NCBI GenBank assembly: GCA_965637545.1
Contig: OZ281495.1
Location: 21,080,001-21,144,000 of the forward strand
From: Phallusia mammillata
Taxonomy: Eukaryota
Direction of reading: 5' to 3'
DNA: 64,000 nt
Positions 9,399 through 56,000 of this stretch are shown in pieces; the first letter of the stretch is position 1; each line of letters begins with the position of its first letter. Position numbers and translations under genes: made by a program. Below the pieces are notes generated by a model. The model was not told the DNA's origin. It saw nothing but the letters and a program-made list of their open reading frames with translations, and did no database searches.

Positions 9399-10038
9399 AT
9401 TTATACAATGGTTTTACCTGCAATTGGTGATTGTTGTTTAAACTAAAAAAAACACTTTTAGCTGGATGTTTCTTAAAACACATGTCAAACTTCACTCTTT
9501 TAAAACACATGTCAAACTTCACATGATTTCATACCATTTACAACCAACACAATATATAAAAAAGTGTGTCAAAAACAAACTTAATCACAAAAATAACAAA
9601 CTTTTTCTGTTCAGATATAAATGCTTAAAAAGTAAGATATGTTAGTACATAAAACAAACTTTGAAGTACACTAATTAATATCATAAGGTATATTTGTTCT
9701 AAAAGTATGTAAAAAAGAAGATTTACAATTTCCAAAACACATCCTGCATCTCTCTGCCCTTTTAACAGCTGCTACACAAATATTTTTAGGTAAAAAATAC
9801 CTATTGATTGTATACATGTAAAGGTACCATGTCCAAACTTGCAATAATAATAAAACTGCATGTACGGATTCTTCACAATTACTGTCAGACAAAAAAGGAA
9901 GAATAAAAACACTCCAATATCAAACAACAACATGATCTTATGTGTCATCATTTACTTTTTTGTGAATATTACTTTTTGTAATATGTACAGTGCCTTACAA
10001 GTAAAATGATGTCTATGAATAATGGATTATCTTTGTGA

Positions 10039-11082
10039 TCATGTGCATCCAAAAACCACACACTCTGCAGATGGGCCATCCACAGTTACACCTCCAATTA
10101 TGAAAAACTTCCCCTGATATAGTATCGACCCTGCTGTACTGCGTTCTTTGGGCATATCAGCAAGTCTTTTCCACTTTTTGCTTTCAGGGTCGAAAAGCTC
10201 AACAGAGCTTATAGGTTTTCCTCCATTTCCTAGTCCACCAACAACTAGAACTTGATTGTCCATAGTTGTGCATGAAAAATCACCTCTCTTGTTGGGCAGA
10301 GACATCTTCTTGTTGGTTTGCCACTCTCCTCTTTCTTGTTGATCTAGTGGGTACATTTCACATGTGTCACAGAATCCCTGTTGAGCAGTTGGCTTGAGTC
10401 CACCCAGAGTCATGACTTGCTTGTCAGTAATTGCATAACACAGAAACACTCTCTGGCTCAAAATGTCGGGATATTTAGTCCATGACCGTGAATCAAAGTC
10501 ATACACCTCAAAGTGAGTGACGGGGAATTTGCCTTGTCTGCCTCCAAGAACATATGCCTTGTTGTTTTTATGAAATGCTTGTGCAGCATATCGTGCAGAT
10601 GGCATTGGAGTAAACGCTTGCCATTTTTCACCAGAAGCACCAATGGCAAAACACTTGAAGTGGTCTCTTGGATTGGTGTCAACACCCATGCCACCAAATA
10701 TGTGTATCTTGTTATCCTTTGAAAAGCTAGCCATTCCCATCAAGGGTTCAGACAAAGCAGACATCTTTTTCCACTTGTTTTCAGCTATGTTGTACAGCTC
10801 CACATTGTCAACCGGTGCCTGTGAGGGACCCACACCACCAATTGCAACTATTTTTCCATCACAAGAAGCTACAGATGGGGCAGCACGCTTCGAAGGCATT
10901 GACTTAAGTTTGGTCCAAGTTTTGGTTGTCAAATCCAAAGCTTCCAGAAGATTGACAGGTTGTCCCAATTCATCACAGCCTCCAACGACATACAGTACAT
11001 TGTTGAAACATGTCAATGACATATAAACTCTTGGTGCTTCCATTGGTGGTAGCGAAGACCAGGTGTGTTCTGAGACTGCCAT
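10039..11082 (-). CDS. KLHDC8: Kelch domain-containing protein 8 (KLHDC8A/B-like), single coding exon, 347 aa
   Basis: Uninterrupted ORF MAVSEHTWSSLPPMEAPRVYMSL...; repeated kelch GG-x-Y/F-x-W motifs. PRVY, GGCD, MPSARYAA, YVLGGRQ and KRGDF segments match vertebrate KLHDC8. The real ATG is at 11082; the ORF track starts at an upstream TTG. Confidence 0.93.
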   Translation of the reverse strand: MAVSEHTWSSLPPMEAPRVYMSLTCFNNVLYVVGGCDELGQPVNLLEALDLTTKTWTKLKSMPSKRAAPSVASCDGKIVAIGGVGPSQAPVDNVELYNIAENKWKKMSALSEPLMGMASFSKDNKIHIFGGMGVDTNPRDHFKCFAIGASGEKWQAFTPMPSARYAAQAFHKNNKAYVLGGRQGKFPVTHFEVYDFDSRSWTKYPDILSQRVFLCYAITDKQVMTLGGLKPTAQQGFCDTCEMYPLDQQERGEWQTNKKMSLPNKRGDFSCTTMDNQVLVVGGLGNGGKPISSVELFDPESKKWKRLADMPKERSTAGSILYQGKFFIIGGVTVDGPSAECVVFGCT

Positions 11083-11839
11083 CTTCAACTTCAATATTTG
11101 GTTAAAATTAAAATAGTAAAACCATCAGCAAAAACTGGCCCTAAAGGTAGTTCAGGTCAGTTAAACATTGTGGAGTTGCACACTAGCCATTAAAGTATAC
11201 ATTTACTATTACATAAATACGCGTGAGAATGGTGAGATGCGTTCCGCAAAGTTTTCGGAATATACGTAGTATTGACACAGAGAACACTTTATTTACATGT
11301 CGCTATGACTCCACTACGTTTGCTTTTAACAAAGTGAAATTCACAATCCACTTCCCTAATCCTGCGCAACGCCTCCAGCCGAAAGTGCACTAAAATGCTA
11401 GAAGCTCGAAGCTGCAGTCATGGACCTAAAGGTAGATTTACTACGGTACGGTCTTAACCGTCTTACAAGTCTGCTCTGCACACTGATCTCTATTTAGAGA
11501 TCAGTGGCTCTGCATCATTGCATGGTGCATTTGCACCACGCACTATTTAGAGAAAAAAGGAAGGAAAAAAAGGCAAATTTTAATTGAAACTTCATTTTTC
11601 TGTGGGCATAGTTTGCGGCTTTGAGCCAATGTCCGGCGGATAGATTGTTAACTATACGTAAACTATTTAATATTCAATGCTTTTCTACGTAGAATAAAAC
11701 GTTGCGGTTGATTTACTATCGCTACGCATGGGTGGTTTTAACGTTCAGCGAAATACGATTTCTCGCGGCAACAAACAAATGGACATTTGAGTTTACCGAA
11801 ACTTGTGTATGTTTTTGGGCCAGCTACCTAAAACCCAAA
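11083..11839. promoter_or_regulatory. Putative bidirectional promoter KLHDC8 / SPICE1
   Basis: 757 bp between divergent ATGs; locally CpG-rich relative to both flanking gene bodies. Confidence 0.65.
11481..11506. mobile_element. 26-bp palindromic minimal hAT-like element
   Basis: CACTGATCTCTA-TT-TAGAGATCAGTG (12-bp perfect arms) flanked by a perfect 8-bp direct repeat GCTCTGCA (11473-11480, 11507-11514). Confidence 0.75.
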
Positions 11840-14800
11840 ATGTTTCATCGGACACACGGTCCAAGAAAGGGCATGCTGAAACAAAGGCGACCGAGACGAA
11901 AGCCGACATCTCTGCATCATCCAGAATGGGATGTGAGTATGTTTTTTGTTTTTATGTAGTGCATCATAAACAGTTTAAAATTATATTCAATAAACCTGTA
12001 ATGAAAAGGAAATGTGGTTAAGCAAACAACTCAAACTGTGAATGATTATTTTCATGTGTTTCATTTTTTTGTGAAAGTTGTGGTTTTAATTTGAAAGTTG
12101 TTGTTAAAATATGTTAGTGTGAATTAAGTTCAAATTGACTGCCAAGAAGCACAATGCTATATACTTGACAAGTTTTTTTCACACTTTCACACCGCAACGA
12201 TAATAAATGCTTTTGATAATAAATGCATTTGAAAACATTGGCATTAAACCAGTCTGCAGAATGTGGCAGCTGCACGCGCGATTTTTTTTTGAAAAAAAAA
12301 ACTTTTGCCAGCCAATTTTTGGGGTTTACACATGGAAATTTTGCACCAAAGGCATTTAATTGGCCTGTCTCACACAGGAACTTACAGGCCATTCATGACA
12401 TGTTGGTCCCCTGGACATGGTGTTAATATTTCCATTTATATAAATTACCTATGATATTTTATCAGAACACAGTTCAAGATTTGACGGTCCATGCAGCTAC
12501 CCCTGAAGAAATTGTAAGTTAACAGGGAAAATTTATTTTTGTTAAATTGGACATTAAAATCATTGCTGTGTTGTAGCTCCAAAAGAAAGTGAGGCGAAAA
12601 TCTAAAAATGCTGATGCAGCAAAGAGAGAATTACAAGCAAAAAAGCAAGGAATCCCTGTTGATCTGATGTTAAGTCCAGGGCAAGTGGAACTTGAAATGA
12701 GAAAGTTAGCAGTTCTAAGAGAGGTTTGTTTACTTTTCCAAATATGTTACTTGCATGAGTCCTCTTTTAAAGTTTTGACTTAAAATTGGACCTAAAATGG
12801 TTTAGATGGAGTGCAAATAAAGGGGTAGTACCAAATACAAGATGTTACCACATGATACTGCATATTGTACTTACGGTACCGCATGATGTGTATAATTTTT
12901 CGCAAAAGAATAATCATGTCCAAAACTGCCTACTTTGTAATCACATACGGTATCCTGCACTAACATGCAGTATGTGGTGTCAATAAAGAACACATTGTTG
13001 AAATGTGTCAAAGGCATATACACTCTTGGTATGTTTATTGGTGGTAGAGAAAATACAGTGTATTCTAACAATGAGACTGCCATATTCAAATGGTATAAAC
13101 AAAAACACATAAAAGTCATAGAAAACCATAAAGGAAGAAGTTCTCTTAGCTTTGTTGTGTTTGATTTCTTTGATGATCAAGACCTTTTTAAATAACTTTT
13201 TTTTAATTAATGTTTAGGTTTTGTATGACCATAATGACCTCAATGAAGTGTTGAGAAGATCTGATAAAACAATGCAATCTGTGAAAGATATATTTCATGA
13301 TACCACCTCTCGTAAAACAGGTAATGATAGCTTGTTAATAATCAAAGGCATTTTTATTTTAAAATCTGTTATAATAGCAAAAAGAAGTTGTGTTTTGTTA
13401 TTGTTACTTTGTCACAGGTCATCCAAACATAACTCTGGCACCTGGAAGGAAATCTTCACCTCCAGTTCAACTTGATGTGGAACAACCTTCAAAACTTGAT
13501 GCTCTGTCTGACTCTGTAATGGACAGTCAGGCATTAAATGAGGAGGTGAGTATCTCTTGTTTCATCCACTTTTTACCAACTTGCATACTGACTTTTTGTG
13601 CTTGAAGGAGTTTTCTGAAGACAGTGAATATGAAGATGATGTTCAGTTTGAGTCAAAAATTGACTGTGACCGATTTTTAAGCCTTTTGAAAGATTCAATG
13701 AACAAGGTTCCCAGAAGACAACCAGAACAAGGACAGGGTAGGCTTTAAATTAGTTCTTATTGTTGTTCTGTTTAGTCTGTTTACTACTCAATACCAAGTA
13801 CTACTGTTTTTCATATTTGTTAGTGTGTGCAATGATTATAATATAAGTTTGACATATACTGTAGAAAAGACTCCAGAAAAATCTAAAGAAGCTCATGAGC
13901 AGTTGCGTTCTGCTTTAAATTGTACTGAGGAGGTGAAAAGAACCTTGTCTAGAATTTCATCAATTCACAATGATGAAACAGCAACCAGTGATGTAGCAAG
14001 TGATGGTTCACAAAAACAGCAAATTAGGTTACTAAGTTTTTCTAGCCTTTTTGTTTCTTATTTTAATATTTAAAAGTATTTAAAAATATACAAATATTTG
14101 AACAATTGTTTAACATTTTTTAGTTTTTGACTATTACCTGAAGCTTTCTGGTCCCTGAGTGAACCCTTTTGCTTACCTCTAGCTGCCACAGAGGCAAAAA
14201 CTTTTGCAGAAAATAATAATCTTTATGTAGGCAATTTTGATTCAGAGCCACAAGAGGTCAATTTTACAAAAAAGATGGAAGCCCACTACTTTAAACTGAA
14301 TAAACATGTATATATAAATTAGGTTAAAATTAGGTATTCCACGGAACATCTTTTTTTTGCATTGGAATTAATAATAATTTGTTTTTTTTTTAAACCTGTC
14401 AAATGATTTATCCGTCTAGATCCAGGTTTCAGTTCTTTTTGGTTTAAAGCCACATTGCACTTATAAAATAAGTTACTAGAAATGGTACAACAGCTAATTA
14501 AATCAGTCTCCAAAAAACTTACATATTCACAGAAAAATTGATAAGACTATCATTGGAATTGGAAAAGATGCTTCAAAACTTCAAAGAAAACTTAACAATT
14601 CAACTGCCTCTACAATAGTTGCTGGTCAACCCAGAGCAAATATTTCAGCCTGCAACATGACATATGATGACCTAAAAGGTAAGTCTTAAAACAAGTATTT
14701 AAGCAGCGGATATTGTCTATTCCTCATCATGATTAAATAAGACTTGTTTTACACTGTATTCTTTTGGTCAAAACATTTTACTCAAACACAGCTTTGGTAC

Positions 14801-17800
14801 AACTTAATGGATTTGCTGCTATATTTGTGTGTAAATAACTTTTCTTGTACAATCTGTACTTGCATGTTAGGTGCAATGGTAAAAGTACAGAAGGGCATAC
14901 AGGAATTGGATGTGAGAAAAGGAAAACCCACAATAAACCAGGCACCACCTAGTGATGGGTTGGCTGGATTTACCGCAACATTAATTGATGCTGTCACACG
15001 ACTGACTGGATACGTCAATGAGGTAGTTTTGACTTCTGCCGTTGCTCAGTAAAATGTGTAAACAATTAAATGCCTATAAGATTGTTGAAGGACAAATTTT
15101 TGACATACATGCTTTAGCAGCATTTTTTTAAACATTGTTCAGTGCAGCTAATTGTATTTGTTATAATCTTTGCAGTTGTTGCATGAATCTTCTAATGTAC
15201 TAAAAAGGTTTTTAAGACAAAAAAATTAACACTGTTCAGGGTGAAGTGAAACTGCAAGGATTCGAGAAGGATGTTGGTGAATTGCAACAGAAATTAGATC
15301 ATCAAATTGCATTAACTGATGCTTTAACATTGGAATTAATGAACTCACAAAACCAGGTAAACCAAGTGTCGGGTTATTTTTATAACAACTAAAAAACATT
15401 TGTAAAGTGAATCCATGTTTTTGATCTAAATAGATGAATTTTGTTGCCAAACAAACAGTGCTGCTACAACATAATAGTTGTGTTGTTTATATCTTGATTC
15501 TGTGGGTTTAAAGCAGTGGTTCTCAAACTTTTTTATTGTCGGGGCCAAATGGTATTTTTGTAAGTGTGTAGGGAGCCGCAAAAAAAACGAAACCGTGAGA
15601 AAATCAATAAAGATTATTACTTTGAAAGCTAAAATAGCAATGTTTGGTGGTTTTCTGAGGTCTGGTGCGAGCCACAATATAAGTAGTTGGGAGCTGCATG
15701 CGGCCCGAAATCCCGAGTTTGAGAACCACTGGTTTAAAGGTTGCCTCGGCTCACATGTTAAGTTTAATTGTGGTATGGTAATGCTAGGCATCAGTTTTGC
15801 TGTAGTTTGAACGGTTGTTTGGTACAGAATTATATGGAAAAGATGTTTTGCACTTTACATGTGAACAACATTTGGCGTAAAGGTATTTTTAAAAAAATTC
15901 CTGGGCAATATTGGTTATGTTTTAGAGAAATAATTTTGTGTGCACCAAATGTTATGTTTTCTGAATTGTAATATACGATTCTACTCATCCCAAATCTCTA
16001 TTGAAATTGCTAGTCCGGCAGAAGAAATATGGCAAACTGAAGCTAGCTTATTCATTCTCCTAAAAACCATACACTATCTTTAGATCAAACTAAACAAACA
16101 AGAAAATGAAAACCTCAGACAAGAGCTTGTTCAGAACAAAGCAGAATCCAAGAAACATTTAGAAGGACATAGTTCACAACTGAATGAAAAAGTTAATGCG
16201 GCAATGGAAAGTGTAAAAGCAATGGAAAGCAAAATTGGTATAATATGTCTGTAAAATTTTATACCTTAGTTTTAATATTATTTTATTGCGTTTAGCTCAA
16301 TTAAACTCTGGAACTGACAAGCAGAGTGGACATGGTGAAGATCAAGAACTAGAGATTATGGAAGGATCTGTATGTTTGTAAAAACAACTGAAAAATCTGT
16401 AATATTAAAGCAGTATATTTTTTAGGCACAAACAAGCAAACAAGATGAAGAATCTGCACTAAAATCTGATATGCTTAAGTTGTTACATGCACTTAAGAGC
16501 AAGAATGACAAGGTTTGATTTATTGAGTGTTTACACAATTTAGACAAGACGAAGGTGGTCTGTGCAATCAATATCATGCGAATGTACAGTGCCTCTGGCT
16601 TCTCTGCTAACCCCAAATTAGAAAATCAATGTACTGTTTACATGCACCTTCAATGACATGTTTTTGTGCACCCAATGTGTCTCAAATGGGTCAGTTTAAT
16701 TATAACAATTGTGTCAAAAACCTTAGCTTAATTGTCTCAATGTTAAATACTTATATGTTGTAAGGTTGAAACAATGCCATTAGCTGCATTTAACACAATA
16801 AAGACACTTTATAATTTAAATGCAATTTACCTTTACGTAAAGGAAAACAGTTGTTGAACATACAGTTTTTTTAAATAGTAAACATCAAAATGACAAATGC
16901 TGACTTTTAAGTGATTTTTTATCGAAGTAGGTTCAATTATTTTCCACATCAAAGTACAGACAAAACTGGTTAATTGCATAAATGATTTGTAAAGTTGTTT
17001 TTTTTTCATTTGGCATGTTTCTGTTTAATTGTGATTTTATGTCATATTGTCCAATGTTTCACAGACACCAGATGTCACCAAGCAGTTACCTGCTGCAGTG
17101 AACCCAAAATCTCAGCCTTTGCCATCAGGCCTTCTCCCTGAGGAAACACAAGAGGCAGCAGAAACCATTGCTTCAGTGGAGAGTCATCTTCGCCATTTAA
17201 AACTTCAGCACTATGAAGCACAGCAGAGAATGAATGAACTGACTAAACAAGCACAAGTAAGAAACAAGCAGTACTTAGTAGAGCATGTAAAGTTTTGCCT
17301 TGAACATCTAACCTAAAAAATGGATTAGCTTTTAACAGTTGTAAGTGTGGGCAAGTTTCTGCTTTTTAGGCATTTTCCATGGAGGCAGCAAGTTCCTCCG
17401 AGCAGCCTTTACGAATGCCATCAGGAAACTATGCATCACCATCAGCTTCTGATTCAACCAGTTTAGCTTCACTTCCTATCAAACTTCCAGCCTCACGAGC
17501 AACTCGTCTTCAAACCAACCTGCCAGCATATGAGGTTCCTCAGCGTGACAGATCCAGGTCTCCAATATCAAATGGTTTTACTATCAAACAGACACATGTT
17601 GTGTCTCAGGATCAAGCCACTGAAAGTGATGAGACCGAAAGCTTTCATTTCCTTAATGCTTCAGACACTGCTAGTACATTGTCTGTGGATGAAAGTCTTT
17701 CGAGTTCACCTCATGTAGCTTTGCAACAGAAGGCTGTCATGGACAGGGTTCAAAAGACCCAGGTGGGTAATTTATTAGACAAAAGAGCTTTAAACACAAA

Positions 17801-18510
17801 ATCTTGCTTAAAATTGCATTACCTTCTGCAATGAAAATTTTTTGGTTTTTAAGTCCCACCAAATTTGTTTTAATCTTGTGCCAAGTGGTGTACCAACTAT
17901 TTTGATTTAAAATTAAGCTTGAACATTAAACATTGAAGTGCCGAGAAGATATTAGCACCATATACTTTCAATCAACTAAGCTTTTCTGGTTACAGGAAAT
18001 CTAATCTTTTTGTTTTAGGTCAGCCTCGAAGATAGAATATCAGAGCTTAATAAACAACACAGTGAAGCTCAGCAGAGACTACAGAATCTTGTGGCTCGCC
18101 GTCGCAATGGTAATGTATTAGTTAGAAGGTGTGCTTATTTTAAGTCCATACTTTGGTACTAAATATCTGGTTTTGTATGCTTGGATAAAGTGTTTCAAAA
18201 AATAGTGAAAACTTCAGTTAGATTTTTTTGTACTGCCGTAGCATGGAAGTTCAAACTCAATACTTTTGAGATTTATTACCAGCATATATTCATGTACTTT
18301 CCTTAGATTCCAGCAAGAAAGTGCAGATCAGTGTTCCAACTGCAGAGATGCTTCAGACTCCACAAATGTCAAAAGTGAGACCCAATGTTTCTCAGGTAAC
18401 AACAGAATATTTGATAACTTGAAGGTACAGTAAACTGAAAAATATTTATTTTACTGCAGATGCAAAATGGAGCAGCATGGTATTCCCTATCATCTCACAC
18501 AAGTACTTAG
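11840..18510 (+). CDS. SPICE1: Spindle and centriole-associated protein 1, multi-exon
   Basis: Exon 1 (11840-11932) plus exon 2 (12466-12513) give ...HPEWD|NTVQDLTVHAATPEEI, matching SPICE1 EWDNTVTDLTVHRATPEDL. Also GHPNITLAP...DSQALNE, GLAGFTATLIDAVTRLTGYVNE, SLEDRISELNKQHSEAQQRL, KKVQISVP, and last exon 18460-18510 MQNGAAWYSLSSHTST* (SPICE1 ends GWFALSTHVS). Not every internal exon boundary was checked. Confidence 0.9.
12992..13089 (-). pseudogene. Decayed copy of the KLHDC8 5' coding end inside a SPICE1 intron
   Basis: Aligns by eye to about 10997-11088 at roughly 75-80% identity with a 6-nt insertion. Translates MAVSLLEYTVFSLPPINIPRVYMPLTHFNNV versus MAVSEHTWSSLPPMEAPRVYMSLTCFNNV. Confidence 0.85.
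15514..15731. mobile_element. hAT (Buster/Charlie-type) MITE, 218 bp, in SPICE1 intron
   Basis: Perfect TIR CAGTGGTTCTCAAACT / AGTTTGAGAACCACTG; perfect TSD GTTTAAAG; same TIR as the 7050 element but a different interior. Confidence 0.92.
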
Positions 18511-22985: not shown

Positions 22986-24410
22986 GATCATTTGAGTTTA
23001 TTTTAAGTTTTTCAAATAGTTCCGCTTTTTGAATTTTGCCCTGTCATTTCAATCGCATAACTTTGCGCACTCAGCTCATCCGTTGGTCGCTTAAAATGGC
23101 GTCACGCCACATAGGTAGTTACACTGTTGCAGGGCAGGCTATGCAGCTTAGTTAGTTATCAGTTTAGGCCTACGAAACGATAGGAAGTGTATGTTTATAG
23201 TTGACACCTGTTAATGCCTGAAAAATATTATGAGGGAAATGTTGTTTTACTATTACGTAAATACAATGTTAATGTGAAGATATTTAGATGTGTAGTACAC
23301 ATTTTTTGTTTATAGGATTACGAAGAAATTTTGTTTAAAAAAAGAATTGTTAGTTTAAACAAATTTTTTTTATTTGTAATGCATAAAGATAGTTTACAAT
23401 TCAGAGAACTAATGACTAAAAATACATTGTATGTTTGTTTTAGCAAATTTGTGATTTGTTCACAAACTGTCTGTGCACTAAACCACTGGTGCAAGCAGTA
23501 GCGGTTGCTTTGAAAAGAAGCACATTTTGGTCTTCTGTCCGATTTCCAAAAGGTTCCATTTTTGAATGCTCATTGTGGTATTCAGCCAATCAGTTTCTTC
23601 ACCATCTTGAAAAATATCAGCCAAGGATTTCCATTTCAGGAATCCTTACGGACTGTGACAAACACTTGCACTTTTTCTGTCCAAGTGCTCTATCAGGGTC
23701 TCTTGGCTTGTCTGCATCTTGTGGGCAAGTTTGAACATTTAAAGTGTGTTTTACTCTAACCAGTTTTCCTTGTTTCTGGTATGTTTGCTTTTCATATTTC
23801 TGTATTTTAAGCTACCCTCTTATCTCAAACACTGTGGTCTCCATTGCTGCCAAGTTGTCTATTTGCTCGCTTACTTTTTGCTTGTCTGGGAAGTGCAGTG
23901 TTTAATCTAGTTTCATCTTCCCCAGCATATGTCAGTTGGTTGTGTTTGTCTCATTTTATTTTTATCTTATCATGCTGTCATAACTTTTGTGTACACCTTG
24001 TGAAAAATCCATAAGTTGATCAGAAAATACTGTTCTCAGGGTATAATATACCATTGCTTTAGTGTAGGTACTAAGTCCCTTGGGCAAGTTTGTGAAAACA
24101 CTGTTGTTGTAAAAGTAGCACATGCATAATATCCACATTGTTATTTTTTGTACTATATCGCCTTATTCGTCTGAACATGCAATGATCGAACTGTGTTAAA
24201 AATTGTGAGTGCATTGACAATTGCTTATCCAGTAGCTAGCTACATTGTGCAGACTCTTCAAAAGAAGGTACAAGCGTGAACATTGATCAAAGACAATTTG
24301 TCACGTCAAACCACAAACTCTATTCATTTGCTGAAGCTTGCCACTCTTTGCACTGTGTTTGCTTTTGGTGCTTGATATCTCACTTCAGTTGAAGACATTA
24401 TAAAATCAAC

Positions 24411-27400
24411 ATGATAAGGTCTGAATACCCACCCCGTCCCAATTTACCTATGCCTGCCGGGTCGCAAATGGATTCTTCAAAGGCACTCGCCATCTTGGAA
24501 TTGCTCAAAGAGCCTGGAAACGAAGTATGTGCAGACTGTGGTGCATCGCTGTCAATAGACTGTGCATGGGCTGTCCTATCATACGGAATCCTTGTATGTG
24601 ATGACTGCAAGTTGGTTCACATTGAACTTGAGAACCATTACAATTTACCGGATGCAGGTGGTGCTTCGGACAGCTCATTGAAAGGTGAGTTGATGTTTTA
24701 ACTTATACCTATACAAGTTTATATATTAGACTCATACAAGTATGTGTTAGTTTTGTGATCAATACAACTCTTAATTTTATTGTGATCTATTGTTTTTAGG
24801 CATACTTTCAACCAACATTACCCACTTATGGGAAGAAAAGGACATTGCACAAATACGTGCCAATGGAAATAACAGGTCCAACAGTCGTTTGCTGGTCAAT
24901 GCACCTGTTTGGCAGTATCAGCCATCTGGTAACGATGGTATAAAACTCAAAGTAAGAATGACAGTTTGTTAAAATTAAAAAGTTTAAAATATTCCAACAA
25001 ATTATTTGCATTTCAGGAGTATTGGATCAAATGCAAGTATAGCGGAAACATTCCAGATGCCGCAGAAAATCCAAAAATGGCTGCAAAAAAATCCTTTATT
25101 GGAATTCAATTCACCAGACCAATGCCAAAAGGTTTGCATTTAAACAAAAGCTAACAACATTTCAGTTATATGTCGGAAATGTGTTGCTATATTACCAATA
25201 GGATGCTAAATTTGTGTTGTGTATTGAACAGGAAATTATCCTTGCTGTGCTGTTTTGCAAAACGACACGCTGTATTTGACGTCAGACATCCGCAATGAAG
25301 AGGTGCCTGTAGAATGTGTTGAAACACTGGTTGTAAACTCAAAAAGAATCGGCCATGAAAATGGTGTTCAGATTACATACCGAATCAACGGCGTCAATGG
25401 TAGCTATAAATGTTGTTTAAACCTGCAGTAACCCCTGTGTGAGAGTAATTGAGTTGGCACTTATTAACCAATCCTGCCTACTGTTTTAGATGGCAACACC
25501 GTGGCATTTACCTACTTGCAACATGACAACATGGAGACGGTGATGGACTGGATTAGCCTTGTGCGGTACACAAAATACAACCTCCTCAAGAGGAAGTACC
25601 CTACAATGATTGACAAAAATGTGGCAAAAATACTGAATTGTGGTAAGCTTTAAAGTGACTAAAGTCATGCAAATTTTTCAAATGTAAACAAACAGAAAAA
25701 TGTTGTAATAAAATAAAGGGTAAATACTGTAAAGCTATCATCACCATGTATATTCAATTTTGCAGGTATGGTAAAGGAATCCTACATGCACGTGTCAGGC
25801 CGTGGTCTAATTTATTTGAGTTTAAGTGAGGCTAGGCTGTCCTGCTTTCAACACCATCTTGATGATAAGCCATTGTTCCAAATTGCAGTCAGCAATGTCA
25901 TGAACCTCACAGGTTGACAACAATGAAACATTTTTTTTACATAAAACGAATGCATATATGATGACTTACTTTTATATTTTTGTTTGTAGCAAGTCAATAT
26001 CTTGATGCAGTTGCTTGTTACTTTGACATTGATGCAGGAAAAATTCTCAGTTATGGTGATTGGCTTAATGCCTTGGAACAAGTGTTGAAAACTGATAAAA
26101 TTGCTGCCATGCCAGGTACAGTTTAGCAGTAAACAAATTGGAGAGTAATTTTTTGACAAATGTTATTTTGTTTTTAGATGACATTCCTAAACCAACATTT
26201 CCGTTTTCATTGCTAAAAAAGACTGAAAAGCCCCCACCGCCTGTGGAAAGAACTGAGCCCCAACCAACTGTCAATCATACTGCTCCAGTTGTAACCACTG
26301 CACCACAAACTATTCCAGAAACAAAGAATGTCCAACCTCCACCAACCCAAAGTAAAAAAATAGCTTTTGAGTTAAAACAAATAAGAGTTAAATAAAACCT
26401 GAATTATACATCCTGGCGTACTGTGAATTATACAGAGTATGGAGTCCGTTACTTTAAAAATATGTAATTTTAAATAGTATATATAATTTACCTTTTAATA
26501 ACAAATTATATAATTATTGTTGCAGTTGATGGCGAAAATGAAAATGAAAAAAAGCCAAGCAACTATGAATGCTACCCTCCAATTGGGCCAATGGGAGAAA
26601 TGGGCAAGGTCTTCAGAGGTTTGTAGCCAGTTAATAGATATAAATCTTACTAAACCAAATCTAATGACATAATTATTTATTATTATCACAGGGGAACTTC
26701 CTCCTGAGGCAATCAAGCCACCTCCCCCTAAAAATGAAATGTCCAGAATTGGGGTATTTGGTGAATTTGTTCCCCCTTTGGCAACACCAGTACAACTGCA
26801 GCAAATTAAAAGTAAGCATATTTGATTTTGCTGTTTGTTTGGTTTTGCAACCAATAACACAAAATACATTTTAGCTGCTGGAAACTTTGGAGACTTGGCC
26901 ACTGCTGGCTTGACATCGTTTGCTGCAACATTAAATTCAGCTCAAAGTGCCATCATTCCTGCTACTGGCAAGGAGCCTGGTTGTTATCCACCTATTGGTG
27001 GACCAGCACAGGCTGTGAAACTTCGCTATGACATGAACACATTGATGCAGGCACAGTTACGCAGAGGTAAGCAACACTGTGTCTCGGTATTTATGTGTTA
27101 AATTTTTCTACAAAAAACATCTGCTAAACTTTTCATACTTTGTTAGAGCAAGAGTTGGAAGCAATTCGCAACGGAGCAGCTGCTGAACTTCAGAGTCAGA
27201 ACTCAATGTTTCGAGCAACAATGGCTCAAAAACAGGTTGGTTTTAATTGAAGCTTGTCCAATTAGTGGATTGTTGTCTGTAACCTGTAATACATTACTGG
27301 TTTGCTTTGACATTTTATCAGCTCTATGAACAAAGCCGACTTCCAACAAGCCTGTCACATGTTGGCCGCTTCTCAGAAACAGATGCTGCTGCCTTTTCTC

Positions 27401-30400
27401 AAGCAGCAATATCACAACATTGTAAGTATACTGTGTGTTCAATGAAACATACAACACACACATCAAATGTCTATTGTTAATTGCAGACCAGGGATGGGGT
27501 GATAGTGCCTCAGACAACATCCTGACAGTTCCTTGGAAACCAACAATCAATGGTTATGAGCCTTCCCGTGGCTTTGGTGGTCTCAATACTCAATATCATG
27601 ACCAAATGGCTTGGAATGCTGTCAAACTTCAAGGTTAATATAACTTTTTACATGCAGCCCTGAAGTTTAGTCTTAAAGTTTTACAAAGTTGTTTTATTTT
27701 AGCTGCTGCAGCCATGGAAAGAAATGCTGCTGCAGCTGCACTTGAAAGAAAGATGCCCCAACAGGCTGCGAAAGGGCTCGGTCAGTTTGCTGCATGGGGA
27801 AGACCACCAACAGATATCACTCAACAAGCAGCAGCTTCACTTACAAGAAGTGCCAGCTGGGCAAATCCAAGTCCAGGTGCAGATTTCAACATTGCTATAT
27901 AGTTTTCCTGTGACTAAAGACTGTTCTTTTATGTGTGTAAATTATCAGGATAAACACTGACAAGTAGGGTAATTTATTGCTTTTTCAAAAACAGATAATT
28001 ATCTGATTATAATCAAACAAACTACAACATAATGGTGACAGACAAACAAAGTGTCTGTTTGTTCAACAAAATTTTATTTTTCAAAAAATTTCAAATTTTT
28101 TTTTTAAATTTTTAATTTTATTTAAATTATAAATTCTTAAATACTTTTTTCAGTTGGCATGGACCACTGGCCTGGAAAATCACCCACAAGTCCAGTGGAT
28201 ACATTTGGTTTGGCAGCTTCACGTGATGCAAGAGGATCAACTGACTTTAGTGCTAGTGCTGGGACTCGTGGATTTGGCATTAATGGAAAAGTCACACGAA
28301 GTGAGTCTACATCTGCATCCCCATCTGGTGTTAACAGGGAACAACAAATGATCATTGAAAATCTTCTTTGCCAATGGAAATCTGCTGAACAGAAACTGCT
28401 TAGCCTTATTCACAATGGTTATGTGCCAGCATCTGACATGACCCCAGCAGGCAAGTCTTTTTACCTATCATGCTCCTATTTTAATTCAATCATATTATTA
28501 GATCTTACTGCTGTGTCACAGGTTTAGACAAAGACAGTGCAGAACATGCCTACACATGTGTATCTGAACTATTTGAGCTCTTGTGGAAACAACGTTATGA
28601 TCTTGCGCTGTCATTCCTGCGTGGCTTCCGTGAAGTGTTTGCAAAATCAGTTCACTCAGAAATACGGAGTCTTTTCATTGGTGAGTGACATGTGCATGCA
28701 TATCGCGATTCTCTGTATGAATTCCATTAAGATACTACACTTTCCCTTTTAAGTGTGTGACTATGAAATTCTCCTAATCTTTGTAGCGTTGAATGTTTTG
28801 ACATCAGTTTTTATATTATCTTGATGCTTGTGGCAGGTGTGGGAGAATTAGACACCATGAAGCAGATATTCATCCAGCAAGGCAAAGAGAAGTTTCTGTC
28901 CGGCAACTCTGGTGGACCTGTCACTTGGAAACAGCCAACTCCACCACCTACACAACCTGAAACATCGTGGCCAACACCCAGTAAGACAAATGGTAACTTG
29001 GGTAAATTGATTCTGTTTAAATTTGTTACAGTATTTTCATGTACTTAATTTTTTTACAAAAACTTTGTGCGCATTTTATGAGAAAGTTTAATCATAAAAG
29101 TTTGGATAAATGTACAAATTTTAAAATTTCTTATCTGGTTGCACTTTGCTGTGTGAAAGAATACTGTCATATATATACATCTGAATAAACACTGCATGGT
29201 TGACATTAGTTTGTGGCACAGCAGCTAATTTAAGCTTATGGCAATATTTGTGTGGTGCAATGCACACATAACGTGACCTGTAATTGCTTAACAAAGCTGC
29301 TTCCGTTTCTGTCTGGCACAGTTTCAACTTCTCAACACAGGAAGTGACTCACTGTGTTTATAAGGCATTTTCAAAAAAGATTGTTTCTTCAAATCCAGGC
29401 ACTCTGCCCCTTCGAGAATCTCCAACTGACTTTTCACCCTGGGGCTACTTCTCAGCCACATCTTCAGAGTCTTCTTCATTGTGGGGTGCAACATCTACTA
29501 CATATTCATCAAGTCGAACTGCTTCACTCAGTTCTGACCCATGGAGCTCAAGTGGTGTGTTCTCTGGCTCAAGTAAGAACAGCTTTTTTGTTTTATTTGG
29601 GCCATGTAAAATCTTATTTGTGCCCAGTTTTGATTTAGTATTAAAAACCAAAGGTTCATTTTTTAAAAAAATAGCTGCTTTAATGTTTTTGGTGCTACAA
29701 AACCTTATGTGTACACCCAGGGCAATCACTGTAAACTAAAAGGTGTGCTTTTAGACTCGATTACACCAACTTCATCATTCAATCGAGCCCCATCTCGTCC
29801 AGTGGCTAGATCCAGCATCGGTGAAAACTCTCCACCGGAAGGTTCGTTTGGATCCAAAACCTCTTCAAAGTGAGTGCATTTTGTGTTACATACTCAATTG
29901 TGGCTGATCTCTGTTGCTGAGCTTTAAAAGCACTTATTTAGATGCTTGACATGATTTGAATTGTCATAGAGTACTTCCATTGATTTTCTATGTTTTTTTC
30001 TTTGACTTTAGGAGCCCATCGCCACGTGTTACTACACCAACAACAGGATTTGATGCAACTACACTCAGTGGCATCGAAACAACCCTTAAAAACATATTCT
30101 GTAAGTTGTGAATTTATTTATTTGGTAAACATTTTGCCATTGTGCAAATTAAATATTAGCTATGGATGGTGTAAGTAGCCCAAATTGTCTGATATTTGTT
30201 GGTTTGTACTTTTGACATGGACCATATTGATTAAGTGAATGCTTGGGAGAAATAAATATTGGTAATTGTTTTCGGATATCCTGGATTGTCGTTTTGCTGT
30301 TCGCTCACATAAGTTTGTTTCTCTATCAATAAGGGTCCATAAGTGTGCTTTGTAACCTAGCTACAGCAACTCATAGCTAACGATTAACCGTTTCGCTATC

Positions 30401-30487
30401 TGCTTCCATGCAATGTTTACATAACTTTTGTTGTCGGCAGTTTCTCTCACCAACTTACTTTTGATTGCAGTGAATTCCGCCGAGTAA
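24411..30487 (+). CDS. Divergent ADAP/centaurin-alpha-like protein: degenerate ArfGAP zinc finger, two PH domains, long Pro/Ser-rich tail with a helical domain; roughly 1050-1100 aa
   Basis: About 22 hand-spliced exons. LELLKEPGNEVCADCG...WA...GILVCDDC, LWEEKDI...NGN, LKEYWIKCKY, RIGHENGVQITY, VMDWISLVRYTKYNLL, VKESYM and DWLNALEQV align in order to ADAP1. The 3' end (last exon 30471-30487, LNSAE*) and the start codon choice are tentative. Confidence 0.8.
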
Positions 30488-36800: not shown

Positions 36801-39133
36801 TGACTCTCTGGGCGCAGTGGTCTGCTGTGAATGTCAAATGTACGGAATTCCGAATGGTGCTTCTGTCGTTTTTGATCATATAAAAAAACGTCACTCACAT
36901 TCTAATCGTATGATGCGTTGCACAAAACGAGCCAGTGTTTCTAAGGCTATATGTGATATGTTATACCTTGCGTCTTCTCTTAACGGTGCCCGTCTTCAAC
37001 CTTCCCAACATTTCTAGATCTTAAATTTCTTCAAACGAGCATGCTCTTAAAAGTTGCGCCAGCGCCGGACAAACGCGGCCTCTGGGCGTAAGGCCAAAAG
37101 TATAGTCGTTCTTCTAATCGATACAACCACTGTTTTAGTATGATATGTGGTACACCACTATTCGGGGGCCTTTTTAGTTTTTTTTTACAGCGAGCAGTGC
37201 TTCTCAACAGTAACCACCGTATGACGTATCCACACAAACCAAGCCCCTTTCCATCCTTGCGCGTATGAAATGTTATAACAGATGCAATACCGACACTTTT
37301 TTGGCACATGCGAAAATCGGGCAAAACCCCTTCTTTTTGGGATGCGTCGTTATGTGCAGATAGTACAACCACTTTATGAGTCAAACGTAAGTGCAATACG
37401 ACTTGAAAAAAAGCTTTGTACTGCGCCCCGTACCCCATTCTCACTTTAGTTCTTGCTACTGTTATCAAACCAGCCCGCCCTTGTACATAGGCGTTCCACA
37501 TCCAAACCATGCTAATTGTGACCGTCACCTATGCTTTAACGTTAACATGATGTAGTTGTTGCTATACCGCATTACGGTGGCACGAAAACCGCGTCTCTGC
37601 TTGCCCAAGTGCTCCAAGTTGTAACCTTTTTATGCGCACAGGTCATGCAATAACATGTCGAAACCTTTCCTCGTCAAATAAGCCATAGGAATTGTGCGGA
37701 ATAACGTGGCGCACAGGACAGCGGTGCATAGGCACTGCCTCAGACCCCGTAAGCCCCACAATATTGTGCCGCGATTTGTATCCGAATGTTTGTGTTTCTT
37801 ATGCTCGTGTCATATCCCTGGATGTAAAAATTCAAACTCTTCCTAAGCATTTACATTTCAAGTTTGTTTTTTGTACTGTGCCGACTTTCCGCTATAATGA
37901 TGCAGTTCCAAGTACATAGTGACGAACCTAACGAGTCTCGCGCGCTTGTTCTGGCGTTTAGTATTATCAAACGTGCTTTACGTATTTATACCTTCTAGTC
38001 GCCCTCCACCACTTGTGTGGGCTACATTGTGTTCCCGGTTATATTCGTTTCAATGTGTTGTCGTGGTAGTGGTGGACCGGGGCTGGTCAATAATAATGAT
38101 ATCTTTGTATATAGCAATGGTGAAAGGCAATCACATTACACTCACCACCCCCATCTTATCGTTCTGTGTTTTTCGCGCTTCAACCGAATGACCATGTTGT
38201 TATTGGCTTTACTGTACAGTAGTGTTTTGCCTGTAGTTGTAATTGTTCGGTAGTTGCTTTAACAATAAATTGTACAGCAAACCACCAGCCTGATCTTATA
38301 CAGCCCATGTCAGTTATTTGAGTGATTGGAATAAAACTTCCACAATAGGAAGCTAATCTATCATGCCCTGCTGTGATGTCAATATGTTGCCGGTTAACCT
38401 CTAAAGTTGCTGCCAGCAAAAAAGCAGTTGAAATAACATCTTTCCTAAACGTTTTTTTTAACTTATGCCTCGAACCAAGTTGAAACTGTGGGTGAATAAA
38501 CGAGTAACTTTCAGTCGCGATCAGTACCTAAAATTAAGTAAAGGTACAATAACGTAATCCACGGTCATTCGTTTAATAAATCGTTTATGAAACGCTGCTA
38601 GTACAGTACAACGCAAAACTGACACAATCTATCACAGCGACAGGAGCGGTTTTCACACAACTGCCATGCAGCTCGAAAACTGGCGGGAAGTATGGATATG
38701 TTGCTGTTATGTATGGGAATGGATGACGGTAATGCCACCGTACGACAACTTCTCACAGTGTAGACAAATATCGCAGCCACTTTTCACAGCTGATGCATTC
38801 AGTGTTTTTCACAATAGAGGGAAGTATAGGCGTAATGTCAAAGCTCGCTGCTTGTGCTGTGTGAGCACTACGTGGAAATCCATGTTTGCTGTTGCTGGTG
38901 TGATACAATGGGCATGTATATAATGCAAACCAACAAAACAATGCAGATTGATTGTGTTTTGCCGATTGTAACCTGAGTCAACATCATACAGATCAAAACA
39001 GCACAATTGCACCACTCGGTATTACAAGACAACGCTGTAAGATATGGCAATTTTGTCGTTTTCGCTGAGCTTGGAGGCCGAGTCTCCGCCAATGCGCCTT
39101 GGCTGAATTCAAACAAAATTAATTTTTAGGTAT

Positions 39134-50078: not shown

Positions 50079-53000
50079 CTATACCAGACAATTTTGATTT
50101 GAATTCGATTGTACTGAATTTTCATGGGACGTACTAGGACTGTTCCTAGTGTTCAGCAAACATGTTTGTTCATCATCTTCTGTAAAAATTAGTAAAAAAC
50201 AAATTGAAATAAGTTAAATTCTGGTTAAGGTCATCAACAATGTAGAAAACGAACTATATTCATAATCCGAACATTAGAGCTAAAAACATGGGCTTATGCT
50301 CGCCATTCCTTACCAAGTGTGTTGCAAGCACGTTGATCGTAAAACATCCGAGTTTCAAGAAGTCTCTGTCTTTGTGCTTGAATAACAAGGCTTTGTGATA
50401 CGTCGGGAATGATTACGTCTACGATGACTTTCAGCCCAAAAACTACGTGCTATCAATCACAAGAAAAAAATTAACAACATAAAAAAGGCTTATAATTAGT
50501 ACAGAATTGGTTTCATATGGCAATTAGTTTTTGTTGAAGCAGAATTAAAATGTGTTTTTTTTGTATGACTTGGAGGCCTTTCGAGTTACTGGCTTTTTTC
50601 AAATGCTTCACTGGTCAAACCAACTATGATCATAATTTTTGCACATGTGCATTGATCAGCTATTTTAAGACACTTGTGCTTCTCCAAAACCAATTGATCG
50701 TCACACGCACCAAAAGGTACTGTTAGATTTTGGTTTCCGATATGGCTGCATACTTTCCAATTCTCTTAAATGCAACTCTTTTACCTTGAAGGATTAGACC
50801 CTGTGTTACAGACAGGTTGAAAAACGTAATAAAATATAACAGTATCGGTCTTGAAAACGATGTCAAATTTAAGTTTTTAATTGCATCCGAGAGCTCACCT
50901 CAAAAACAAACATGAAAATAAATATCCCAGCATACACATGCCAATGATTCACGTCGTGTCCTGTGTGGTGAATGGAATCGTTGGGATCTACATTTTCATA
51001 CCTATAACATTCATAAAATTACATTATTAACATGTGTATACAATGTGTAGGTTTTCATACAAAACCGTAAACGTAGCCTTGAAGTCCAAGTTATTTTGCA
51101 AACGTGTTGTCTCATTATATGACCTACCAACAGGTTGAAGGCACGCCAGCAGCTGAGGAGTTGTATGGTGGGCGTTTGTCAATTAGTTCCACTGAAATAT
51201 TGGATAGGGTGCTCATAACGTAGCCCTCGAAACAACTGCAAAAATAGCAAACTTTATATCGTTGTTTACACACAGTTCATACCTTAGTATTCACCGAAGT
51301 GATTGCAGCATAAATTGGGGGGAAATACACACCATATAGTTTAATAAAAGCCTATAGTCGTTCTTGGCTACAAAGTATTGACGTTCAGCATTATAGGACC
51401 TTAGACGGTGGAAAATCTCATTCTTGTACTCCACCAACCGGGCCAAATGAGTGGGCTCGTTTACAACAGCGAGGGTTTAAACTTTAAATCATATTGCGGT
51501 AGGCTAAAATTTTAGGACCCAACCCCTTACCAATTCTATAACATAAATCAGAGTTGCAAGCGGGCCCGAAATCTGAACCCGAACCCGGCCCGAACCCGGC
51601 CCGAACCCGGCCCGAACCCGAAAGTATAAGCCCGAAGCCCGGCCCGAACCCGAAACGTTTTTGAAAAGCCCGTTTAGGCCCGAAATTTTGATTGACAGGC
51701 TTATCCACGAAAGCCTTGCGACAAAGTATGAGAAAGAAAAACAGAGAAAAGATAACAAACACAATGAACAATAGTAGACAATGGGGTAAACAATACGTTT
51801 TAGAGTAGGGTGGGCATTAGGTCAAAGCCAGAGAATTGTTACTAAAAAATGGCGGAAACGGAACGTAAAGTCAGGCCCGTTTTGCGCCCGTTTTCTGACA
51901 AATACCTAAGCCCGAACCCGGCCCGAACCCGAACCCGGCCCGAAAAACCCGGCCCGACTTGCAACTCTGACATGAATAAAATAAATTCTATGACATGAAA
52001 CAAATCGATTCCACTAACTTGTCAGAACGGTTTGGATTTATTGCACAAGGGCTGTAAAGTGCAATGTAGACCATCTTCTGTATGAAGTTAGATGTGATGC
52101 CGATGAGGAGACCGTTAGTTAACACTGCCACAATACTGATACCCTCTAGTATTGAGAACCACATTCCTACAAAAAATAATAAGTTAGTGATCAATCTATA
52201 CAACTAAATTTTATACGCAATATATTATCATGAAAATAAACATAGACATTAAAGAGGCTCACATGCGGAATACCGTGTGCTGTGAGGTAACGTTTACTAT
52301 TTAAAATGTGATTGAAAGTTTGGCGGTCACGGTGTACAAACAGACATAAAATCTTACCAATGTCCTTGCTGCGATCAGGTACAACTCGTCGATACTGGGT
52401 CACAAACTTGTAGGCGTCTAATCTGATCTCAATAACGTTGTTGAGCAAAGCAAAAAGTGGGCCAAGTGGGAAAGCAGTAACAAACAACGTTACAAAGCCA
52501 AACTGTATAACTGCAAAAGACGTAATGTGTTTGATATTGCCCCGTATTATATTAACCTACACCAAGATCAATATTGCTGCAATTAGTGACCTGTAATGCA
52601 ATCATTCGATGCCATGCGGTATGAGTTTTGTAATATATCCAATATTAGTGCATAATTCATGCCGAAGACTGATTCAAATTGGTTTACATAAGCTGCTGAC
52701 ATTTTTAACAAATTCGATTCAACTTGCCCATTTCAAGATATTCCGAGAAAAGTCCAAGTTCTTCAAATGGTTCCAACGAATAATCGCGAAATGTTGCTTG
52801 ATCGAGCAGCTTGTCCGACAGTTCGTCCTGTGAATTTTTTTGTGGTGATTCTGTTGAGTGTGAATAATGATAAGGTTAACGTTACATAGGAATAAATCAC
52901 AGTACGCCAGGCCCATTGAAGGCGCTATACCGAATCAGCCGGTCACCAAGCATTCACCACCATATGGCAAGGCGTAGGCTAGAAAAATCTAGCCTGCGGT

Positions 53001-56000
53001 GGGATTCGAACCCACGACAGGAGTCTTTCCGGGACTCGCGCTCTACCAACTGAGCTACACAGGCCCAGTGGAGAATCCGCCGAAAGTCGAATCACAAGCA
53101 CCGTTGCCTGCCTCGTATGCTGCACATGTCAGCTTCGTAGTAGGGGATCGCCAGATTGACCAGTATCAGTTAAGATGAACATAAATTCATAACTGGGATC
53201 AGCCCTGAAGCGTCTATGCAGACCAGCGATCACGGCACACTCATATATAAATCACAGTACGCCAGGCCCATTGAAGGCGCTTGTGATTCGACTTTCGGCG
53301 GATTCTCCACTGGGCCTGTGTAGCTCAGTTGGTAGTTCGGCGGATTCTCCACCGCAGGCTAGATTTTTCTAGCCTACGCCTTGCCATATGGTGGTGAATG
53401 CTTGGTGACCGGCTGATTCGGTATAGCGCCTTCAATGGGCCTGGCGTACTGTGATTTACATATGAGTGTGCCGTGATCGCTGGTCTGCATAGACGCTTCA
53501 GGGCTGATCCCAGTTATGAATTTATGTTCATCTTACATAGGAATAGGACTATAGTAAACAGGAGGTACAATGTGTCGTTGTAAGGTAACGTTATTTTTAG
53601 TATTTAATGTTATTCACGTTTTTCTGGAACTGTTTTGATTCCAAATACCTTTAATCCTTTTCTCCAAATCCTTTTTAAGTTTCATCGATTTTCTCTTTTT
53701 CCACCAGTTTGACAACACTCTGTGCAAACAATTCTATTTAGCCTCAAAATAGTGCACATTCAGGTCTAAAACTAGCAAATATCGCTTACGGAAAGAGTAT
53801 TTCTTTGATGTTGTTTAGTGCTTGCTTCAATACCATCACTAATCCAAGATTAATACAAACTTCGATCAAGCAACCAGCTGGATCACACTGAAAATACGGA
53901 TAGCGGTTTAACCCTTACAAATTCTATTCACCTTGTAGACAAAACGATTTCAAAGCCAAAAAACATCAAGTAGCTGCATGACTATGTTATGTGTTAAAAC
54001 CATGGTACTCTTGGTAATTGTTTAGAATCTGTTTAGGATTGTAAAAAATAAGTTTTTGAAATTTTACTGTATATACGGTCTAACTCTAACCTGTTCCTGG
54101 CGAAAACCTCCAATGCGGTTGTAGCTAAATGGTGTTCCAACAACCCTACCGCGGAAAAAAGCGGCATAAAAAGTAGAAGAATAATAGTTAACTGCTTGAA
54201 ACAGAAACATCTTAAGAGTGTAAGAATCCTCAAACTCATCCTGTGTTCGTGGAGCCTCTGCAACGTCACATATTTACAACAACATAAAGTCAAAAGGTCA
54301 GTCTTCATTAATGCAACCAACTTACCCATGTTGGTGAGTTTGATGGCCAGTTTCTGATATAACTTAAAAAAATCAAATATATGTTTGATATTGAATTGGA
54401 AGTTTGTTAAAGCAACCAAGCATCTACATTTTCAAGTTAATGGCTAGAACACATATGATATAATTATTTTGTTGATAATAATAATTACACGTATCGCCTG
54501 TAAACACAACTTTGGTCTATATAACTTATGTGTATATCTGCTCATAAGAAAAGTTATGACTGTAAATCATATACCACATCCATAATGGTAATGATGATAA
54601 AGTTAATGAAAGAGGCCGAGACCGAGATAAGAAGGCGGGAGTTTTGTCGCAGAAATACATCAGGTGTGCTGTAGTAAGCTACTTCAGTGAGAATTGTTCT
54701 GTATAGAATCACACCGAAAAGAGCAGCCAGTACCAGGAGTAACTGTGAAAAATAGCATTAAATATATCAAAGTTGTCGAAGTTTAAAACCATAAATTTTA
54801 CGACTGTTTGAGTAGCCTATATAACTTTTATGTATCTTTTTGTTATTTTCGAAACGCTTACCATGAACAAAAACGTTGTACATGATGCAGCGATTCTTTT
54901 TCCTTTGAGGTTAGATGACAAATATGGTTCTTGCTTTCCAGTCACCGGATTCAACTTTTGCTTGTTGGCCACAGTTTCAAATTCTGGTCGGACCAGGCCC
55001 TAAATAAGTCACAAGTCACTTACTAAACTTAGGAATGACAACAAATGATAACTTAAATTACACAATTTGTACCTCTTGCCGGTTGATGTCATTCGTATCC
55101 CACTTGTACGCCAGTTCTGCACGCCTTCGCTTCCAAAATTCCAGGAAAAATGTTGCTACACAATTTACAACAAGAGTTTGGTTTGTGAAAATGGTGTTAG
55201 GCAATAAATATCACCCACACAAGCAACATATCAATTTTATTGCGATCATAGGGCTATTGTCCTAAATTTAATACTTTTCTTTTATTGCAAGGTTCAAAAA
55301 ATAGGTTTAAAATGAACACAAACAGCAACGGTTAACGATTTACAAAACTGCTGGAAGTGTGTGTTGTTAAGATAAAGGTATCTCCTACACCCGGCACAGA
55401 CCCGATTGAAAGTTGCTGAAATTACAACACAAATAAGCCATAATGTGCGAATTAACACCTGAATCAAGTTCAGTTTATTTACACTCAAACCCAAACTTGA
55501 ATTCAACCCGCAGACCGCGCGAATTACAACAAAATGCAGTAACAGTCATGGGTTACCTACCCCATATCGCCATGATAAAGGAATAGATCACAGTGAACGT
55601 GTTGTCAAACACGTAGGTCACTTGACTGTACAGACACGAGTGGTTGAGTGGGACAAAAGTGCAGGTGTCGCAAAGCGGACAAATCTCCAAATTCGAACTG
55701 CAAACCTGTTGCCTGTATAAAAAGTTGGTTTGTGTATAAAAACGTTTTCGCAATTAATAACTTAAACACTTTACCAACACGACAGAACTTTTGTTCAAAA
55801 TACGTGAGGTAAAACGAGTGCGCCAAACTGAAAATATCGTGTTTCATTTCGCCTAAGTTTTCATGTTTTACCCAACTTACTGTATTTCGTCGCTCGCAAC
55901 AGTGCCGAGGCCGTACAAGAATGCAAGAACACCAAGGATCGCCGCAGGTATCAACATTTCTGTATAAAATCCCAACCAAGCAAAGTAAACTCCAATTTTC

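Follow-up and report, generated by a model that had tools for sequence, protein, structure and literature searches.

A predicted five-helix domain of no described family in the disordered tail of a tunicate pseudo-ArfGAP protein

Introduction

What kind of folded unit does the long tail of an ArfGAP-like protein of the ascidian Phallusia mammillata contain? The gene lies in a stretch of 64,000 nucleotides (nt) of contig OZ281495.1 (assembly GCA_965637545.1, positions 21,080,001 to 21,144,000 of the forward strand), referred to here as the window. Working from the letters of the window, a preliminary description had singled out an amphipathic-helical block of about 90 amino acids (aa) within Ser/Pro-rich disorder, likened it by eye to a CARD or death fold, and suggested that its fusion to a dead ArfGAP-PH-PH module could yield a membrane-trafficking, innate-immune or apoptosis adaptor. 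Public databases already list both the gene and the protein, though without characterisation, the product being the P. mammillata "Zinc finger protein ArfGAP-1" (UniRef A0A6F9D6G4, 1080 aa). This entry, P0015, was used in the analyses as the database stand-in for the spliced protein of the window, and residue numbers follow it. Modeling indicates that the block is an autonomously folding domain of about 120 residues and five helices, belonging to no described family, in an otherwise disordered tail of 640 residues.

A predicted five-helix domain

An AlphaFold2 model of the block, computed from a 14-sequence alignment, has a mean predicted local distance difference test score (pLDDT) of 87.2 and a predicted template modeling score (pTM) of 0.78. 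Five helices are predicted, spanning residues 5-35, 53-68, 72-86, 92-98 and 103-123 of the model and corresponding to P0015 residues 800-830, 848-863, 867-881, 887-893 and 898-918, the first of them 31 residues long. When the whole tail (P0015 440-1080) was folded, the same five helices returned with pLDDT values of 73-93, and nearly everything else fell below 50.

At the DNA level, window positions 28336-28449 translate to REQQMIIENLLCQWKSAEQKLLSLIHNGYVPASDMTPA and positions 28524-28679 to LDKDSAEHAYTCVSELFELLWKQRYDLALSFLRGFREVFAKSVHSEIRSLFI, in exact agreement with the peptide first reported. The existence of a conserved helical block within disorder is borne out. Its span, given before as 28336-28680, was too short. 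The following exon encodes a fifth helix (H5; pLDDT 91-93) that is conserved in the orthologs and in the brachiopod Lingula anatina, and the joint leading to it (28679/80 to 28836/7) is present in spliced contigs of all four sequencing runs described below. The domain therefore extends to about position 28907, with the folded unit (P0015 about 800-918) assembled from the three coding parts listed in Table 1. An intron of the GC-AG type divides the first part from the second and splits the codon of Gly842 as G/GT. A nearby alternative GT donor would lead into a stop codon, and the GC-AG junction is required because the length bookkeeping of the contigs and the P0015 sequence TPAG-LDKDS demand the same junction.

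Conservation was expressed as the mean identity to P0015 over 30-aa windows among six full-length tunicate proteins, that is, five orthologs compared with P0015. By this measure the block (residues 811-930) scores 0.67-0.81, the ArfGAP/PH head 0.5-0.75 and the flanking Ser/Pro/Trp-rich sequence 0.2-0.3. Eleven positions are invariant in 14 of 14 sequences: H850, C854, E857, Y867, A870, L871, S872, R875, G876, F881 and S884. The first three are spaced i, i+4, i+7, which places them on one face of helix 2, and all faces of helix 3 (ALSFLRGFREVF) are conserved. Between the first two helices, the loop NGYVPASDM is invariant among ascidians and recognizable in Lingula as KGLVPGSSI.

Searches for a known fold or family

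Like a CARD, the Phallusia domain is a small all-alpha unit of around one hundred residues inside a multidomain protein. CARDs and other death folds, however, comprise six antiparallel helices in a Greek-key arrangement of about 90 residues. The predicted structure was checked for such a six-helix bundle, the absence of which had been set beforehand as refuting the assignment, and it shows only five helices, including one of 31 residues. Sequence comparisons agree with the model, as no match to CARD, Death, DED or PYRIN was obtained when Pfam was scanned with the exon peptides and the 14 alignment members, or when the profile was compared with the PDB. Nor was a death fold found by structure, either among the 50 Foldseek matches listed for the PDB, none of which was better than E 0.93, or among the top 50 of 48,161 chains compared by VIA-align. 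The best partial structural matches were generic three-helix bundles covering residues about 49-113. With no CARD found, the proposal of an innate-immune or apoptosis adaptor is removed as a false lead.

Other searches left the domain without a family. When the exon peptides, full-length orthologs and 14 alignment members (the last to E 10) were compared with Pfam, nothing fell on the block and the only matches were ArfGap and noise, and PDB sequence searches with both halves and the profile gave chance rows only (E at least 0.13). A shape search of the ESM Atlas reached template modeling (TM) scores of at most 0.40, and feature searches of the same resource, whether the query was the exon or the P0015 domain, produced no usable match. 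One Pfam entry, PF26564 ('pPH'), was considered as a model of the block and rejected; it follows ArfGap and is absent from the block-bearing Lingula protein.

Gene structure and transcripts

The block had been proposed to belong to the same gene as the ArfGAP exon, and this is upheld by spliced contigs from four runs of the same organism, provisionally classed as RNA, as well as by the UniRef protein. Single contigs of 11,980 and 11,019 nt, together with shorter ones from two further runs, span the ArfGAP, PH-like, disordered and block exons with joints of the GT..AG type. Mapping the joints of these contigs to the window gave a 22-exon model with one open reading frame running from the ArfGAP exon through the helical block (Table 1). 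The model reproduces the contig coordinates 2519, 3221 and 3833 exactly. Its translation is identical to P0015 at 1057 of 1057 aligned residues, the only differences being indels of one and three amino acids. About 46% of the words of 24300-30200 are present in public runs of the same organism, roughly the expectation from exons alone (3,325 of 5,901 bases).

Table 1. Features of the P. mammillata gene in window coordinates
Feature	Position	Strand	Remark
Whole coding region	24411-30487	+	22 exons; window isoform of 1076 aa
ArfGAP zinc finger, CX2CX19CX2CX4-Ile	24528-24623	+	Pfam ArfGap 3e-11 on exon
Rest of ArfGAP domain and PH-like region, exons	24800-26351	+	Ortholog identity 0.5-0.75
Near-invariant motif CYPPIGPMGEMGKVxRGELPPxAIxPxPxK	26570-26732	+	Intron-split
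Shorter second copy, CYPPIGGP	26982-27005	+	
Domain part 1: long helix H1 (P0015 800-830) and conserved loop NGYVPASDM..AG	28324-28450	+	
GC-AG intron inside the domain	28451-28521	+	71 nt; donor CAG/GCAAGT; read from sequence
Domain part 2: H2 (848-863), H3 (867-881), H4 (887-893)	28522-28680	+	
Domain part 3: helix H5 (898-918, GELDTMKQIF..)	28837-28907	+	Beyond the span first described
Disordered tail with VTWKQP, SW, TDFSPW, LWG, SDPW, SFNRAPSRP and C-terminal GIETTLKNIF helix	28920-30099	+	

Several variations were noted along the transcript. One is an insertion polymorphism at 26287, where run X17 and P0015 carry three extra nucleotides, GTT, that add a Val to a Pro/Thr-rich linker. Exon 18 ends in two 5' splice sites that lie 9 nt apart, at 28992 and 29001; the contigs use the former, and P0015 uses the downstream donor and gains Asn-Leu-Gly (NLG). 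Beyond the stop codon (30487), the spliced contigs continue for 6.6-7.8 kb, from window position 30471 to about 37100-38240, implying a very long 3' untranslated region or terminal exon. Direct evidence covers the 255 nt that follow the last joint, and the rest is implied by the two contigs of 11,019 and 11,980 nt. This extension coincides with raised G+C content (0.42-0.46) and a strong skew of T over A.

Elsewhere in the window, a series of open exons with abundant Glu, Lys, Gln and Leu lies upstream of the ArfGAP gene at 12577-17831 on the plus strand and, from its composition, looks like a separate gene for a coiled-coil protein. A tRNA-Ser (GGA) gene was located by ARAGORN at 52990-53065 on the minus strand.

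The head and the linear motifs

The ArfGAP signature is CX2CX16CX2CX4R, in which the arginine is needed for activity (PMC2542466). In six of six tunicate orthologs the corresponding sequence is CX2CX19CX2CX4I, with Ile at the position of the catalytic Arg and a spacer of 19 residues, and the earlier reading of this domain as dead is thereby supported. All four Cys of the C4 zinc finger are present, and Pfam ArfGap matches the full-length orthologs at 1e-13 to 1.2e-16. After ArfGap, a precomputed Pfam match to PF26564 is recorded in the orthologs; the local Pfam scan gave no PH match. A search for the gene, for this accession and for 'pPH' found nothing specific in the searchable literature.

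With an ArfGAP zinc finger at its N-terminus and a PH-like region behind it, the protein resembles ADAP1 and ADAP2 (centaurin-alpha; ArfGAP with dual PH domains). Human ADAPs are 374-381 aa long and stop once their second PH domain is complete (PMC2542466), whereas the Phallusia protein continues for about 700 further residues that include the five-helix domain. It also differs in its spacer, 19 rather than 16 residues, and in the Ile that stands in for the catalytic Arg. Architecturally, it falls within the ADAP class of ArfGAP proteins as a variant whose tail holds an undescribed, lineage-restricted domain. For the unfamiliar ArfGAP-PH-PH-CARD-like arrangement originally put forward, it is borne out that no Pfam model covers the block, and the CARD-like part is unsupported.

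Between the head and the domain lies the CYPPIG motif, the most conserved stretch of the protein, with an identity of 0.87 in the covering 30-aa window. It is predicted to be disordered (AlphaFold2 pLDDT 40-48), and no known motif class was recognized in it. The tail that follows the domain has pLDDT values below 40, apart from its last helix (51-60). Its five Trp motifs keep their positions in the full-length ascidian orthologs P0015, P0014, P0004 and P0013; the surrounding sequence varies, and the Trp positions are kept across ascidian orders. Docking of the CYPPIG or Trp motifs onto the domain was not seen in the whole-tail fold, which leaves the motifs at pLDDT below 50; this is a weak negative, as contacts are not reported.

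Distribution of the domain

An exhaustive HMMER search of 1.84 billion representative proteins with the 52-aa central exon returned only 12 matches at E ≤0.001. Relatives were recovered solely in tunicates, in fragments from plankton metagenomes and in one brachiopod protein, LOC106152082 of Lingula anatina. Among tunicates, identity over the block is 88% in Clavelina lepadiformis (P0014), 72% and 68% in Styela clava and a close relative (P0013 and P0004), and 83% and 49% in two Logan-assembled transcripts (P0016 and P0017). The pseudo-ArfGAP is kept in every tunicate sequence recovered. The plankton sequences (P0005-P0010) are exon-sized fragments from Tara metagenomes, a source checked for P0009. 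Two of them, P0007 and P0009, match P0017 at all but 1 of 49 positions in the central exon, and from this match the fragments presumably derive from pelagic tunicates. Three further candidates (P0001, P0003 and P0011) match through short repeated stretches only and look spurious. In vertebrates, the domain was not detected at the sensitivity of the HMMER search.

The Lingula protein (P0012, 433 aa) is 37% identical over 101 aa (BLASTP 1e-19) and carries the domain at its C-terminus. Its gene occupies 10001-13986 of the extracted stretch of LFEI02000309.1, with an ARMC6-like gene on the opposite strand as its upstream neighbor. Neither the gene itself nor 10 kb of upstream sequence yielded an ArfGAP, and the presence of the domain in a protein that lacks ArfGAP fits an independent module. 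Introns appear to be placed differently within the domain than in Phallusia, judging by the boundaries of the tblastn pieces. In a low-confidence ESM Atlas model, the nearest structural neighbor of residues 4-268 is an ADAP2-like dual-PH cluster (TM 0.39/0.45). For these approximately 270 N-terminal residues, this modeled likeness is a weak resemblance and a lead only. By profile-profile comparison, the Lingula N-terminus showed no significant similarity to the tunicate PH region (E 0.12), and a word-index search with the Lingula protein, whole and domain region, found only itself. The domain is a module older than the tunicates and is possibly associated with dual PH domains.

Possible roles of the domain

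The most plausible account is that the block is an orphan helical interaction module in a tunicate ADAP-like protein, and we consider it probable with some reserve. A membrane-associated scaffold is suggested by the layout of the protein, in which a head is followed by a disordered, motif-bearing tail and a compact domain. As such a scaffold, the protein could serve in membrane traffic or signaling. Its pseudo-ArfGAP/PH head would target it to membranes or to Arf-family GTPases without GTP hydrolysis, and the Trp-based and CYPPIG linear motifs of the disordered tail would recruit other factors. The five-helix domain may then present a fixed surface for docking a specific partner or for self-association, with a candidate docking face made up of helix 2 (H850, C854, E857) and helix 3 (Y867, ALSFLRGFR), the latter invariant at almost every position.

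Several points weigh against an interaction module. Docking of a partner, the likeliest role, is read from architecture alone, and the searchable literature yielded no partner, localization or phenotype. The 14-sequence alignment is shallow and half of it consists of fragments. The clustering of the invariant residues was deduced from helical periodicity, not from the coordinates of the model. Finally, the invariant His/Cys/Glu set would be compatible with a metal or ligand site too.

Two groups of proteins offer analogies for an interaction module. GIT1 and GIT2 are ArfGAP-family proteins in which a distal helical bundle acts as a docking site; their C-terminal, paxillin-binding FAT-homology domain is a four-helix bundle. 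The analogy is functional, as no chain of this kind is among the 50 best structural matches from VIA-align and no sequence similarity was found. Accessory proteins of endocytosis and of COPI transport likewise combine a folded membrane-targeting head with a long disordered tail bearing Trp motifs, comparable to SDPW and TDFSPW here. In those proteins, DPW, WxxF and W-acidic (ArfGAP1-type) motifs recruit factors, and by analogy the Phallusia Trp motifs are putative ligands of AP-2, COPI or other receptors. We know of no accessory protein with Trp motifs whose tail holds a comparable folded helical domain.

Alternatively, the domain may act mainly in self-association, as a dimer or oligomer that makes the linear motifs multivalent. 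This account overlaps with that of an interaction module, and, as the main role, it is unlikely but tenable. Scaffolds with motif-bearing disordered tails often carry self-association modules, and both the long amphipathic first helix and the conservation of helix 3 on all its faces would suit one. Against it, a single chain by itself gives a compact and confident model, at the pTM given above.

It is rather improbable that the block serves as a small domain for binding a ligand or metal, perhaps with catalytic activity, through a zinc, phospho-ligand or lipid-headgroup site on the face formed by His850-x3-Cys854-x2-Glu857 with Tyr867, Ser872 and Arg875. The invariant polar residues of helix 2 would lie beside the Tyr, Ser and Arg of helix 3 in tunicates, Lingula and the plankton fragments, and His, Cys and Glu rarely stay invariant in purely structural helical bundles. 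However, searches of Pfam, the PDB, Foldseek and VIA-align gave no match to a known metal-binding or enzymatic family, and just three potential ligands are conserved. Since Ala851 and Leu858 fall on the same face, these residues may merely be buried in the core.

A bolder extension, to which we give little credence, makes the block the founder of a new and ancient (at least bilaterian) family of helical domains, in which the invariant His-Cys-Glu/Tyr-Ser-Arg cluster would form a site for a metal or phospho-ligand linked to membrane sensors with dual PH domains. Vertebrates would have lost this family, and tunicates and brachiopods would have retained it. That the block is a strongly diverged CARD or other death fold, assembling homotypically in a pathway of innate immunity or apoptosis, is scarcely credible; despite the small all-alpha character of the block, this reading is largely refuted by the five-helix model and the searches above.

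Conclusions

With the CARD assignment set aside, the result that remains is a cleanly delimited, strongly conserved and, by prediction, well-folding domain without family assignment in a pseudo-ArfGAP protein. Its impact is likely to be confined to tunicate cell biology and the cataloguing of domains. Within that field, the ease of injecting and imaging ascidian embryos makes the domain tractable for structure determination and partner discovery. The domain could show what ADAP-type proteins do after the loss of GTPase-activating catalysis.
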